A DNA stretch of 63,978 bases, filler included, from Lenisia limosa (lineage: Eukaryota; Protista; Breviatea), in NCBI GenBank assembly GCA_001655205.1. It is 10 parts of 10 records of this genome, joined end to end, with 100 filler letters (N's around TTAATTAATTAA, not from the genome) between each part and the next. Parts side by side here need not be neighbours in the genome. Positions count along the whole stretch, not along the records: positions 20,085 to 25,668 come from LPNZ01003799.1; 9 more parts are not named here. One strand, 5' to 3'. Positions 19,985 to 26,141 of the stretch are shown here, piece by piece. The position numbers were made by a program, and so were the translations under genes. The notes beneath the pieces are model-generated. The model worked only from the letters and a program-made list of their open reading frames with translations. It was not told the DNA's origin and ran no database searches. Position 1 is the first letter of the stretch; each line of letters opens with the position of its first letter.

Positions 19985-20409
19985 NNNNNNNNNNNNNNNN
20001 NNNNNNNNNNNNNNNNNNNNNNNNNNNNTTAATTAATTAANNNNNNNNNNNNNNNNNNNNNNNNNNNNNNNNNNNNNNNNNNNNCCTAATACTCCCTCTT
20101 TTGAAAAAAAATAACATCATAGAATAAAGAACATAATGATATTTTATCCTTTGTTATGAGGATGTTTGACCTGCCCAACGCCTGAATCGTCAGAGTACAT
20201 AATGGGAGAGCTATGGAGCCGATAAGTATGTATTTTTTACTCATTAGTTCATTCGACAGATAAAGAATCCGGCGTTAAAAGTTTCTGACCTTTGACCTTG
20301 ACGGTGGTGATATTTCCAGTGTCTTCACTCATCAAATCCATTTACCAAATGAAAGCAAATGAAGATAAGAATCGGTATTTACAGGGCACGTGCGTCAGCC
20401 CATCATCAC

Positions 20410-23400
20410 TTTGGCCTCAGCAGTGACGTTCGCGCCGGAGCTTAGCAAAAGTTGGACTATTTCAGCATGGCCTTTGTAGGCAGCATCCTGCAGGGGTGTC
20501 TCCTGTGTCTAAAGAAAGTTAATTGATCCAAACCTCCCTCTGTGGGCTGGGGGTATGGTGTGAATGGAACCTTTTCAGCATTTCGAGATGCAAATTATAG
20601 GAATAGTTACCAATCGATGTGATAATACGTGATGATTAGTGGCAGCAGACAGAAACACAGCAGGCCTCAATATTTCCACTCACATCGTCACATGCGTTGT
20701 TGACCTCAGCGCCTGAGCTGAGAAGAATTTGGACAATTTCAGCATGGCCTTTATAGGCAGCCTTATGCAGGGGTGTTTTTTGTGTCTGAAGAAAGTTAAC
20801 TGTACTGGGGGTATCGTGTGGATGGAATAAATTGTAAAATTTGAGTGGAAAATCCCTAGGAGGCGGAAACCCCTATGGATTTCCAAGAGTTTGACAAACT
20901 CATATTTTTGAAAGAATCCACTAAATTTTTGTTGGCAAACTTATACGATGGCCCTGGGGTTTACAGTGAATATACCAAAAAAATTTAAATTAAATAGCCA
21001 GTCAATTCTTTATCTACTACTTAAGATGCTTGAAAACAGATAGTTACACTCTCAAGGGCACAGAAAGAAAATAAAGGAATTCTAATTTCCGAGATCTCCA
21101 ACATTTTCCGGTTTGGTACCTTTATCTCTCCTGTGACCATCTGAGGGAGCACAGTCAAAGAAAAACGTTGATTATTCAGTTTTCTGTGAACAGTATGGTA
21201 GACCCCGCTCTATGTGTTTATCTTGAACTAAAGCTTCTAGATCGAAGTAATCTACGTAAATTTTGTTTTTGGCTACTTATTTGCTCCTTGAAAGTCTCTA
21301 CTTGTCCTAGCTTGTCACCCCTCGTCCTCTTCTCTTCTTTTCGGGTCTTCTTATAAGCTTAGATCAAATGTTACATCGTTTTATTGCGGTTTCGTTCAAA
21401 AATCCATTTTTTACCCATTAAGTGGACTCCCGCTTTAAATATCAAAGCCAACTAACTGTTTGTAGAATGTCTAAAAATAAGAGAATCTTAGAGATAAGAA
21501 GCCAGCCAACTGCAGCGACGGGTTTTTGTTGTTTCCAACCCTTTGGTCTCTAAGATCGGAATTCCATTTTCGATGAGTTGTTTCATGAAATAAATCGTCT
21601 TTGTAAATAACCCCTTCAAAGGGACAGCCCCTCAGTCCTTCAGACTACACCGGAAAGTATTCAGCATTTCGAGACTACTGCAAATAATGTGAATAGTTCT
21701 CAACATATAATGTTCTGACATTGGAGAGTATAATACTGTTATGTACCTCATAGAGGAGAGTTAGAGTGAACTACACCCGCTCTGAAGTAGTAGCCGATTT
21801 TTAACAAAATCGGCAATAGAATAAACACCAGGTAGAATAAACACCAGGCCAATGTTTACACTCACCTTGTCACGTGCGTTGACGTCCGCGCCGGAGCTTA
21901 ACAGAATTTGGACAACTTCAGTACGTCCATAATCGGCAGCCTCATGCAGGGGTGTACGTTGGTTCTGGAGAAAGTTAATTGATACAAACCTCCCTTGACG
22001 GGGTTTGGTGTGAATGGAAAATAGTCAGCATCTCGAGACCGCACAAAAAATGGGAAGGAATATTTCTCAACCGATATAAAAATGTATTGACTTATTTCGA
22101 GGAGTATGCTTTTAATGTATCTCTGAAGAGTATTAGCCGAATTCCTAACACAAAATTGGAGGCAGAATATATTACAGCAGGCCTCAAAAATTCCCCTCAC
22201 CTTGTCACATGCAGTGACGTTCGCGCCGGAGCTTAGCAATGTTTGGACTATTTCAGCATGGCCTTGATGGGCAGCCTTAATAAGGGGTGTCTGTTGGTCC
22301 TGAAAAAGTTAATTGGTCCAAACCAAGTTCATATGATATGGTAAATGGTAAATAATAACATCTCAAGCTCTATGATATCATATTATATTATACTAGATGA
22401 TATGTACGTCATATGAACACAGTTCTAAAAAACTTGGAGAGCGTGATTTATAGTGGACACTCGTTGAATCTCAATCTATCCCAAATCAACGGCAGAATAT
22501 ACAGCAGGCCCCAGTATTTCCCCTCACCTTGTCACATGCGTTGACGTCTGCGCCGGAGCTGAGTAGAATTTGGACACTTTCAGCATGGCCATGATAGGCA
22601 GCCGCATGTAGGGGCGTCTGTAGGAGCTGAAGAAAGTTAATCAATTCTATCGGCAGGCTGGGGGTATGGCATGAATGGACGATATTCATTTCGAGACCAC
22701 TGCAAATGATAGGAACGTTTCTGAAGCGACAAAATAATTATCTGCCATATTTTGGAGAGGATACTTTAATGCACCTTATGAAAGCGAGAGAGGCATAACC
22801 CACTCTGAATACCATTATCCGAATTTCTAACACAAAATTGGCGGCAAGCATACACTCAAAAATTCCCCTCACCTTGTCACACGCAGTGACGTCCGCACTG
22901 GAGCTTTTCAGCATTTGGACTATTTCAGCATGGCCTTCATTGGCAGCATGATGCAGGGGTGTCCGTTGGTACTGAAGAAAGTTAATCGATCCAAACCCCC
23001 CTCGACAGGCTGGGGGTATGGTAAATGATTAATATTAACCCATATTGTATAGGGAAATATAAATATGACCGAATTGAAGGTCGATATGACAACCGAGGAA
23101 AACACAAGGATGTAGCCCAAGTGAACCACTCGTTGAATCCCTCAAAATTTCCCTTCACCTCGTCACGTGAGTTGACGTCCGCGCCAGAGCTTAGCAGAAC
23201 TTGGACAACATCAGCAAGGCCTAGACTGGCAGCCGCATGCAGGGGTGTCTGCAGGAGCTGAAGAAAGTTAATCTAATCTTCCCTCAATGGATGGGGTGGT
23301 GTGAATAAAACATATTCAGCAATTCGAGATCACTGCAAAGGAAGTATTTCTCAACCGATATAATAATGTTCTGACTCATTTGGGAGGGTATGCTTAGAAT

Positions 23401-24763
23401 GTACCATATAGAGGCGAGTTAGCGGGAACTACACCCATGAAGAGTAATAGCCGAATTTCTATTCATCATAACAAGGCGGCAGAGAATACACCATCCCTCA
23501 ATATTCCCTCACTTTGGCAACAGCGTTAACGTCCGCGCCGGAACTTAGCAGAATTTGGACAATATCAACATGGCCTTTATAGGCAGCCTTATACAGGGGT
23601 GTCCATAGGCTCTGAAGAAAGTTAATTGTTTCAAACCTCCCTCTGTGGGCTGGGGGTATGAGGTTAATGAAACATATTCAGCAATTCGAGACTACTGCAA
23701 ATAAAGGAAATATGTCTCAACCGATATAATAATGTTCTGGCCCATTTGGGAGGGTATGCTTATAATAGAGGGAACTACACCCACTCTGAAGAGTTTTAGT
23801 CGAATTTCTATTCATCATAACTCGGCGGCAGAGAATACACCATCCCTCAATATTCCCTCACTTTGGCAACAGCGTTAACGTCCGCGCCGGAACTTAGCAG
23901 AATTTGGACAATTTCAGTGTGGCCTTTGAAGGCGGCATTATGCAGGGGTGTTTCACCATTCTAAAGAAAGTTAATTGATCCAAACCTCCTGTGTGGGCTG
24001 GGGGAATGGTGTTAATTGAACATATTCAGCAATTCGAGACCACTGCAAGTTATAGAAATATTTCTCAACCGATATAATAATGTTCTGACTCATGAGAGTG
24101 TACTTATAAAGGAACTTACAGGTAGGTGAGAGGACCCCACCCGCTCTGAAGATTATGGGCCGAATCTCAATCTATCCCAAATCAACGGCAGAATATACAG
24201 CAGGCCCCAGTATTTCCCCTCACCTTGTCACATGCGTTGACGTCTGCGCCAGAGCTGAGTAGAATTTGGACAATTTCAGCATGGCCTTCATTGGCAGCCG
24301 CATACAGGGGTGTTCGTTGGAACTGAAGAAAGTTAATTGATCCAAACATCAGTCGTTAGTGATATGGAGTAAATGGAAAATATTCAGGACTTCGAGACCA
24401 ATCCAAAACTCTCTTGGAACCCATTGTGCGACACACATTATTCAACTATTGGACACTCTTAGGAATTGCTTTAGTATCACAATATTTATCGTTGTGCTAA
24501 TACATCACCCCAGCCAATGCCAATAAACTGTGTTTAAAGACTGCATAAAGTCATGAGACTCAATTAAAATAACTAAGAACAAAATTGCCATCGCTAACGG
24601 TAAATTATAAATTCGAATGACCCATCAAAAATCACTTGATATTTCAACTGACAGTGTCCTTTGCGTTGACATCAGCGCCATTGTTGACAAGCGTTTTGGA
24701 AGTTTCAACATCGCCATTTTGAGAAGCCAAAAGCAGCTGCGGCTGAGAGCGCGTAGCAAACAT
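20410..24763 (-). CDS. Ankyrin-repeat protein: N-cap exon plus 10 single-repeat exons
   Basis: Exon 1 (24653-24763) reads [37 protein letters not shown]. It is followed by 99-nt phase-0 exons at 24224-24322, 23862-23960, 23513-23611, 23159-23257, 22873-22971, 22528-22626, 22201-22299, 21866-21964 and 20410-20508, plus 20684-20785 (102 nt). Each encodes [33 protein letters not shown]. Confidence 0.93.
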
Positions 24764-26141
24764 TGTTGAGGATTGAAGAGGAATCTACAAACTGACGTCA
24801 GAATGTCAGAATGGGTTAAACTATGATGGTAATAGTATTTGTATGGCCAGTTCCGTGTGGATCAAAAATAACGATATATGCAACATAATTACCAGCTTTT
24901 CTACATACATAATGACATAATATACATAAGAAGATTCTCACTGGATTACTAGCGAGTGTGTGACGAGTGTGTTGCTTGCAGTGTTGCTCTTGTGCCCAAG
25001 GGGCCGCGGGGATTATGAAGATCCACGGATCCGCGCCAGATCGGGTCAGCTCGCCACGGGGGTGGTGCCCTAAGGGTAAAATAACTATACAATTATGGTC
25101 TCGTACAGAATTTTATCGTTTACGGTTTCAAAGTCTATCATCGGTTTTAGTTAGTCAGTGTATTTATTATTGTAAATTCGGTAAGCGGTAGGCAATTCAC
25201 CATCACAGTCTCGAGATCAACGCACTTTGGTTCACCCCCTCAAGAGTTCCGTTCTATTCCGGTATAAAAACACTTTAGTTTGCTTTAAAAACTCTTGTAA
25301 GCGGCGTCAGACCTTTATGGGACTCTTTCAGGAGTCTTGTCCTCCTCAATTCTTCTCTCTCCAGACTGCCCATTTTCATGTACATCTTATCATTTTTTTT
25401 TTTTTTATCTGGGGTGTATATGGTATATAGTGTATAGAATTACATGGGGGGTACAATATATATTGTATTGTTTATACACCTGTGCGTGTATTGTGCATTG
25501 TATTTGTATTCCTCCAGCTACAGCTACAGCATGTACATGCATTGTGTAGATATGTATTCCTCCAGCTACAGCTACAGCATGTACATGTATTGTGTATCTT
25601 TTCTATTACTGGGGTATCTATATAGGGTATAGAATTACATGGGGGGTACATATAACAGTTTTGTATTGNNNNNNNNNNNNNNNNNNNNNNNNNNNNNNNN
25701 NNNNNNNNNNNNTTAATTAATTAANNNNNNNNNNNNNNNNNNNNNNNNNNNNNNNNNNNNNNNNNNNNATGTAGGAGAGTGAGAGAATGTCAAGCATCCG
25801 CGTTGCAAAACTTTTCCTTTGATAAGTGCCATTCATAATATGAATACATGAAGGTGGGTTTAAAAAACGATTACTTGAATCTCACAAACCGATGAAAGAG
25901 TGAAGGAGAAGAGAAAAAAGGGAAAAAGGACAAGAGGGAAACCTTATATTGAGCACTGACTTCCTAAGTGACATACAAAGAAAAAATCCTTTTCCACCAT
26001 TACAACTTTCGTGTACCCTAATGAGAAGGAGAAGATTGGGGTGGGAATGTTGATAGAAAACAACAAAAGCAAAAGGAGTTGTTGAAAAGAAATAAAAAGC
26101 AAGAGGGGGAAACAGCTATCAGCTCTTTGTCTTCAGCAAAC

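Follow-up and report, generated by a model that had tools for sequence, protein, structure and literature searches.

A region of the Lenisia limosa genome (Breviatea; assembly GCA_001655205.1) contains an expressed ankyrin gene in which each repeat is encoded by an exon of its own and in which these exons, together with their introns, form a series of mutually homologous units. The gene was identified in the window, a stretch of 63,978 nucleotides joined from ten parts of this genome, and is the single gene on the piece examined (positions 20085-25668, from LPNZ01003799.1), where it occupies the minus strand. We consider it probable that it is a eukaryotic gene enlarged by tandem exon duplication, which encodes an ankyrin-only protein acting as an ordinary intracellular binder. 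An earlier note on this DNA had proposed that the array could be a diversifying recognition system directed against viruses, symbionts, or prey, with exons skipped, added, or swapped without loss of frame; that proposal now appears improbable. As it is now known, the gene illustrates, with support from RNA, how a repeat array grows by tandem exon duplication, with gene conversion still ongoing and variation focused on the binding face.

Exons were sought as open stretches flanked by AG and GT and carrying TPL at residues 4-6, and the scan yielded exactly ten repeat exons, all in phase 0, nine of 99 nt and one of 102 nt, preceded by an N-terminal capping exon, exactly as the earlier note had described. 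Exon 1 (24653-24763) comprises the ATG and a capping repeat, 37 amino acids in total ending with NAKDT, and is followed by the donor GTCAGT in phase 0; it is weakly homologous to the repeat exons at the DNA and protein levels (nhmmer E 7e-8). The residues that the note had listed at positions 1-3, 7-8, and 11-12 of each repeat were all correct on re-translation, and they serve here to tell apart the exons, all encoded on the minus strand: exon 2 (24224-24322; FQR, YA, NE), exon 3 (23862-23960; NGE, HN, FK), exon 4 (23513-23611; SLW, YK, YK), exon 5 (23159-23257; LLQ, HA, SL), exon 6 (22873-22971; YQR, HH, NE), exon 7 (22528-22626; LLQ, HA, YH), exon 8 (22201-22299; DQQ, IK, HQ), exon 9 (21866-21964; NQR, HE, DY), and exon 10 (20684-20785; TQK, HK, YK), the last being the 102-nt exon with one additional asparagine codon. 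Exon 11 (20395-20508; TQE, QD, YK) holds the final repeat (20508-20410), four further codons, and the stop codon TGA at 20397-20395. Exons 2-10 were recovered by both the scan and Pfam, with RNA evidence for each, which for exon 2 consists of joints on both sides and for exon 4 of its joint with exon 3. Every repeat is therefore a symmetric cassette, with its own exon of a length divisible by three, equal phase on both sides, and canonical splice sites. Searches with nhmmer and six-frame hmmsearch detected only the 11 coding exons, each encoded on the minus strand, and no spare, inactivated, or antisense exons in the introns; in the rest of the piece, no other credible open reading frame (ORF), Rfam family, or tRNA was found.

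The ten introns measure 175-330 nt, with the exception of intron 9 (20786-21865, minus strand), which is 1080 nt long and is removed in RNA (joint 20785->21866). The ends of intron 9 are homologous to those of the other introns, its middle part of approximately 800 nt is unique, and it contains no ORFs, no exon copy, and no terminal inverted repeats marking a transposon; near its 5' end lies a perfect 16-nt tandem duplication (21817-21848). The exon-intron units are 277-362 bp long, except for one of 1179 bp, which owes its length to the 1080-nt intron. The duplicated unit of about 300-450 bp given in the earlier note is thus right with regard to duplication and wrong with regard to size. The intron ends that the note had reported as common to the units are real, as found by both the scan and the unit alignment: they read GTGAGGGG.. 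and ..TTAACTTTCTTCAG, also written GTGAGGGGAA... and ...ATTAACTTTCTTCAG.

Expression and splicing are documented by public sequencing data. The locus is present in two public runs only, both from the same study, one of DNA type and one of polyA RNA, and the RNA evidence consists of assembled contigs aligned to the piece, an assembly being prone to drop variants and able to miss rare isoforms. Nine of the ten predicted joints are present in the contigs of the polyA RNA run (X2), where they appear as CT..AC on the plus strand, which corresponds to GT..AG on the gene strand; the first of them joins 24653 to 24322. The remaining joint, between exons 4 and 5, is ambiguous, with the 30 contig letters beyond it fitting the identical 3' ends of both exon 3 and exon 4, and the aligner chose exon 3. 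An apparent skipping of exon 4 (joint 23257->23862) was rejected on this ground, since its 30-nt side falls within 51 nt that are identical in exons 3 and 4; for the same reason, an assembly graph with k=31 must branch at these two exons. The combinatorial use of exons suggested by the earlier note found no counterpart in these data: the only isoform visible in the RNA contigs is the full-inclusion order, and the sole apparent skip reflects ambiguous placement.

At the 5' end, RNA contig 10 covers positions 24653-24900 colinearly with the genome and without a joint, so that the transcript reaches 24900 and the 5' untranslated region (UTR) spans at least 137 nt (24764-24900, minus strand). The N-terminus is fixed by a TAG codon found in frame 24 nt before the ATG. 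The transcribed 5' UTR also contains a perfect palindrome of the cAMP response element (CRE) type, TGACGTCA (24793-24800), approximately 30 nt upstream of the ATG. At the 3' end, RNA contig 9, which runs from exon 5 to exon 11, continues colinearly and without a mismatch for 7 nt beyond the former exon 11 donor and stops at 20403. The reading frame closes four codons past the last repeat (..AEAKVMMG), giving a spliced product of 372 amino acids. The hexamer after this repeat, GTGATG, occupies the position of the ancestral donor and is a degenerate form of the ancestral GTGAGG. It is probable that the gene ends here, inside the piece. The earlier note had placed the 3' end beyond a break in the scaffold; the in-frame stop is found inside the piece, and the RNA ends shortly before it.

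The peptides of all ten repeat exons individually matched the Pfam family Ank (PF00023), with a best E-value of 4.7e-12 and, for the one match whose score was fully shown, 43.7 bits against a cut-off of 21.1, and the exon register is identical to the Pfam repeat register. The spliced product is composed of ten contiguous repeats and a degenerate N-terminal repeat devoid of TPL, and it is predicted to form a capped tandem stack. The repeats are 61-79% identical to the first one, with a mean column identity of 75%. The protein shows no signal peptide-like N-terminus and no additional domain (NOD, kinase, death, or TIR). When the repeat profile was compared with solved structures, designed ankyrin repeat proteins (DARPins) and consensus-designed ankyrins were the best matches, followed by ankyrin-1/2. 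The framework shared with DARPins, TPLH.AA..GH.EIV..LL..GADVNA.D, extends over approximately 20 of the 33 positions, as counted from the alignment.

Variation within this framework is concentrated at a few sites. The seven codons with the highest nucleotide diversity are 1, 2, 3, 8, 11, 12, and 31, which correspond to DARPin positions 3, 4, 5, 10, 13, 14, and 33 (exon position + 2 = DARPin position). In DARPins, six positions are reportedly randomized (Binz et al., 2003), and five of these six, namely 3, 5, 13, 14, and 33, fall among the seven most variable codons here. By comparison, the outer helix is invariant in the array at positions 19, 23, and 24 and nearly so at position 15, while the same four positions are among the most variable in a pool of 503 ankyrin repeats; the within-protein background of variability comprised 11 proteins, and hence the pooled per-position entropies alone were used. 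With the outer-helix positions frozen, the variation is therefore focused on the face formed by the hairpin and inner helix and does not extend to all non-consensus positions. Polar and aromatic residues make up almost the entire set at the variable positions, which includes neither proline nor cysteine, according to a tally made by eye. Structure matches and codon diversity bear out the DARPin-like reading of the earlier note: the scaffold lies near the DARPin consensus, and variation clusters on the face of the beta-hairpin and inner helix.

Homology among the introns is evident from local alignments, with 70-85% identity, Tandem Repeats Finder (TRF) reported a period of 349 bp with 87% matches, and the unit alignment confirmed that whole exon-intron units are homologous, as tandem duplication requires. 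Two exact tracts stand out against this background. In the first, 89 nt (23824-23912, minus strand), comprising 51 nt of exon 3 and 38 nt of intron 3, are identical to positions 23475-23563 in exon 4 and intron 4, while the introns flanking this tract are only about 85% identical between both units. In the second, also 89 nt long (24162-24250, minus strand), 27 nt of exon 2 and 62 nt of intron 2 are identical to positions 22466-22554 in exon 7 and intron 7, a unit that is not adjacent. These exact tracts contrast with a background identity of approximately 57% at neutral sites. Exon 2 has its nearest counterpart in exon 6 over the 5' half (86%) and in exon 7 over the 3' half (98%), and the array is therefore a mosaic. 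The two identical stretches are gene-conversion tracts, and the units of the array continue to undergo short-tract conversion of this kind. Both tracts cover the 3' end of an exon and the start of the following intron and leave the variable codons untouched; two events prove nothing with regard to avoidance of these codons.

The mean pairwise difference between units was 0.434 at intron columns (n=172), 0.451 at fourfold degenerate sites of codons 20-33, 0.494 at variable codons, and 0.140 at fourfold degenerate sites of codons 4-19. Neutral sites are thus near saturation, and most repeats must therefore be old. The ratio of nonsynonymous to synonymous rates (dN/dS) was approximately 0.25 at scaffold codons and 0.85 (NG86) within the variable codons. 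In a tree-free comparison, the variable codons differed from the introns by a factor of only about 1.2, which was not significant (p=0.14). A codon model was also applied in which the intron columns set the branch lengths and the seven codons named in the earlier note formed the test set; relative to introns, the nonsynonymous rate of these codons was 1.89 and the synonymous rate 0.89 (likelihood-ratio test of the nonsynonymous rate against 1, p=0.001). None of 100 null simulations, in which 7 or 10 codons were strictly neutral and the top seven were picked post hoc, reached 1.89, the maximum being 1.75. The estimate of 1.89 must be read with three caveats: gap-optimized intron alignments probably understate neutral divergence, the demonstrated recombination breaks the assumption of a single tree, and the variable class holds few synonymous sites. 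When branch lengths were left free, omega came to 4.7, a value that was set aside because constrained synonymous sites lower its dS.

The youngest pair of repeats, exons 3 and 4, offers the clearest signal. Pairwise intron distances with free end gaps were dropped as a neutral yardstick, as shuffled sequence behaved likewise (p=0.26), and the full alignment of the two units was used in their place. The introns of this pair differ at 74 of 480 aligned columns (15.4%) and exon nucleotides 1-48 at 17 of 48 (35.4%; p=0.0011 versus introns), with codons 1-3 differing at eight of nine bases (binomial P=2.5e-6); exon nucleotides 49-99 and the following 38 intron bases are identical. Together, these results are moderate evidence that the variable codons change faster than neutral sites. 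The excess of nonsynonymous change predicted in the earlier note is thus found in the tree-based model and in the exon 3/exon 4 pair, but not in the tree-free pairwise comparison.

The silent sites show a pattern of their own. In the 5' half of exons 2-11, codons 4-19 have a synonymous rate of 0.20 of the intron rate, even though they are interleaved with saturated variable codons; splicing enhancers, or local homogenization opposed by selection, are possible causes. In an amphioxus gene with a similar array (XP_078583816.1), nucleotide diversity (pi) at fourfold degenerate sites is mostly 0-0.15 over the whole exon, with two sites at 0.38, and the intron flanks have a pi of approximately 0.47-0.49. 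Silent-site conservation restricted to exons may be a general property of such arrays.

No paralog or close homolog was detected in the collections searched. A profile search of 1.84 billion representatives returned generic consensus-like ankyrin proteins alone, from sources ranging from amphioxus to bacteria and fungi, and the best full-length match to the spliced product had 49% identity, with XP_078583816.1 among the best at this level. In metagenomes, the DNA pattern of intron plus exon gave 0 matches, and a scan with a peptide pattern gave 43 loci, nearly all of them intronless ankyrin genes of prokaryote type. Two ORFs that span introns had no exact match on look-up, and a 96-amino-acid read-through fragment used for a word search likewise retrieved nothing. 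The paralogous family anticipated in the earlier note was thus detected neither by the metagenome DNA pattern nor by the peptide scan or fragment look-ups. One metagenome contig, Ga0307942_1016757 (L002, 369-467), from a eukaryote in a JGI metagenome, carries a 99-nt ankyrin exon (SGYTPL...NKADT) that is flanked by AG and GT and has exactly the register of the exons described here; its best match with exon 2 has 69% identity over 29 residues, and this metagenomic exon is also present in L001.

We propose that the array would have grown by unequal recombination between homologous introns. Since the unit carries one 99-nt phase-0 exon, every duplication would add exactly one 33-residue repeat in frame, and the units would go on exchanging short tracts by gene conversion. 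In all ten repeats, purifying selection would preserve the scaffold and, with it, the surface of the outer helix, and the hairpin and inner-helix positions of the concave face would diverge separately in each repeat, at a rate equal to the neutral one or somewhat higher; some positive selection probably acted on these residues after duplication. The product would most likely be an ordinary intracellular, presumably cytosolic, protein-binding scaffold or adaptor, whose specificity would come from the repeat-specific concave residues.

Several points weigh against this explanation. The roughly twofold, tree-based rate excess at the variable codons hints at more than a static binder. The silent sites of codons 4-19 (pi 0.14) are unexpectedly conserved, which the proposed scheme leaves unaccounted for. 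The RNA contigs leave positions 20085-20402, including the presumed 3' UTR, uncovered, with the contig stop preceding the stop codon, and further exons or a C-terminal domain may lie past the edge of the piece. The array could accordingly represent the N-terminal part of a larger multi-domain gene with its other exons beyond the 3' edge, which would agree with the piece ending 310 nt past the putative stop, with the missing coverage despite a polyA-selected library, with the GT still present at the ancestral donor position after exon 11, and with the best-scoring relatives being long multi-domain proteins. Such an extension is nevertheless unlikely, given that the RNA contig, which has neither a mismatch nor a loose end there, remains colinear for 7 nt beyond the former donor, that the donor has decayed and the sequence downstream has largely lost its homology to the other introns, and that a stop codon follows in frame four codons on. 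As for the variable codons, unconstrained surface residues may simply have drifted neutrally, the rate excess being an artefact of underestimated intron divergence, of gene conversion that breaks the assumption of a single tree, and of post-hoc choice of sites. The tree-free values, in which the variable codons hardly exceed either introns or the fourfold sites of codons 20-33, the dN/dS of 0.85 within these codons, the gap-optimized introns that probably understate divergence (the p=0.26 obtained with shuffled sequence), and the demonstrated recombination are all in keeping with drift. It is, however, opposed by the intron-calibrated model and its post-hoc null simulations, by the near-complete replacement of codons 1-3 between exons 3 and 4 against a difference of 15% in 480 intron columns, and by the polar and aromatic residues without proline or cysteine, which suggest filtering, and we regard drift alone as a rather unlikely account.

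The view of the earlier note, that the array is a diversifying recognition system, in which alternative splicing or recombination in the germline or soma would omit, add, or exchange cassettes and so generate many binding specificities against viruses, symbionts, or prey, draws on several observations: the cassettes are all of equal length and symmetric (0-0), variation lies on the concave face, with five of the seven top codons among those randomized in DARPins, nonsynonymous change proceeds at about 1.9 times the intron rate and codons 1-3 were almost wholly replaced in the youngest duplicate, conversion tracts and mosaic exons reveal a recombining array, and precedents exist in the leucine-rich repeat (LRR) and tetratricopeptide repeat (TPR) exons of Ectocarpus (PMC3341825) and in the ankyrin repeats of fungal NOD-like receptors (NLRs; PMC4986451). 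Against it stand the full-inclusion order of the RNA contigs, in which the lone skipping joint is a mapping ambiguity, introns free of spare, inactivated, or antisense exons, a protein with no NOD, kinase, death, or TIR domain and an N-terminus set by the upstream in-frame stop, the lack of a paralog or close relative in the collections searched, neutral sites so near saturation (pi ~0.43-0.45) that the repeats must be mostly old and without rapid turnover, and a mean repeat identity of 75%, below the >85% of fungal hypervariable arrays. We therefore hold a recognition system of this kind to be quite improbable. A related scheme would be a germline-diversified "natural DARPin", in which short-tract conversion keeps the frameworks uniform, including the silent sites of codons 4-19, strong diversifying selection keeps the hairpin and inner-helix codons different, and repeat number, order, and residues vary among individuals or paralogs; we judge it just as doubtful. 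If it were true, the gene would represent a variable intracellular recognition repertoire in a eukaryote in which none is known. Were polymorphism or membership in a family to be demonstrated, the array would stand beside the LRR/TPR genes of Ectocarpus and the NLR repeats of fungi as their counterpart built from ankyrin repeats, and would serve as a natural test of the ankyrin positions that evolution randomizes. The explanation we favor, an intracellular binder grown by tandem exon duplication, is of use for annotating genes in an organism with little representation and, on a small scale, for studying how repeat proteins evolve.

The sequence upstream of the gene has features of its own. Positions 24947-25507, just upstream of the transcript 5' end, show a DNA word depth of 540-1400, compared with approximately 35 on the gene, and small indel variants among contigs; this segment is a high-copy repeat (roughly 15-40x), possibly a transposon fragment or a satellite. 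It is followed by a 48-nt unit present in 1.9 tandem copies with 97% match (25505-25596), on each side of which lies a copy of a ...GGGTATAGAATTACATGGGGGGTACA... motif, the two copies being similar (about 25410-25460 and 25605-25650).

Among known systems, DARPins and consensus ankyrins (PDB 6mol, 2qyj NI3C, 1n0r, 4gpm) are similar to the repeats described here in their framework and are the best structure matches. In contrast to them, the L. limosa gene is natural and split by introns, the hairpin glycine is mostly replaced by glutamine, and position 8, leucine in DARPins, is polar and variable. Exon position 33, which corresponds to DARPin position 2, is here a nearly fixed lysine at the splice donor, and the outer helix reads VQ.LLSS, compared with VEVLLK in DARPins. 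The membrane-binding domain of the vertebrate ankyrins ANK1-3 resembles the L. limosa protein in being a long ankyrin array that matches the repeat profile (4rlv, 7tw3), and human ANK1 has 24 repeats, most of them reportedly encoded by individual 99-bp exons (Gallagher et al., 1997). The vertebrate proteins differ in being giant and multi-domain; their repeats are old and have diverged, and the introns of different units are not homologous.

Two systems with a role for variable repeats share part of this design. In Ectocarpus, ROCO-LRR and NB-ARC-TPR genes encode one repeat per phase-0 exon (72 nt for LRR; 42-amino-acid TPR exons) with variable ligand-binding residues, and their loci contain inactivated and antisense exon copies in introns, clustered families with pseudogenes, and fusions to signaling domains (Zambounis et al., 2012; PMC3341825). 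The gene described here has the same constant-length phase-0 exon per repeat and the same variability of binding residues and differs in the type of repeat; its N-terminus is fixed and no signaling fusion of the Ectocarpus kind (ROCO, NB-ARC, or kinase), nor any other domain, was found within the piece. In fungal NLRs, near-identical ANK, TPR, and WD repeats carry positively selected sites on the concave inner helices and hairpin, undergo concerted evolution, repeat reshuffling, and repeat-number polymorphism between isolates, have >85% internal identity over at least 100 amino acids, and are joined to NACHT or NB-ARC and effector domains (Dyrka et al., 2014; PMC4986451). The likeness to the L. 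limosa array lies in repeats with variable positions on the hairpin and inner helix of the concave face, whereas the latter has 75% identity, below the >85% criterion, near-saturated neutral sites, no NOD domain, and an exon of its own for every repeat.

The closest parallel is the amphioxus gene encoding XP_078583816.1, which contains at least 14 AG/GT-flanked 99-nt exons with one ankyrin repeat each, separated by short introns. It shares with the L. limosa gene a mean repeat identity of 75%, intron flanks that have diverged (pi ~0.47), and variable hot spots located at the hairpin and where helix 1 ends, with QRTPL in place of GxTPL. It differs in that its introns are placed one codon off, its product is 1976 amino acids long with extra non-repeat sequence, its silent sites are conserved over the entire exon, and its position 8 is not variable, and the two genes are not orthologs. 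Because an amphioxus gene has the same architecture, the arrangement of one ankyrin repeat per exon is by itself no sign of a recognition library.

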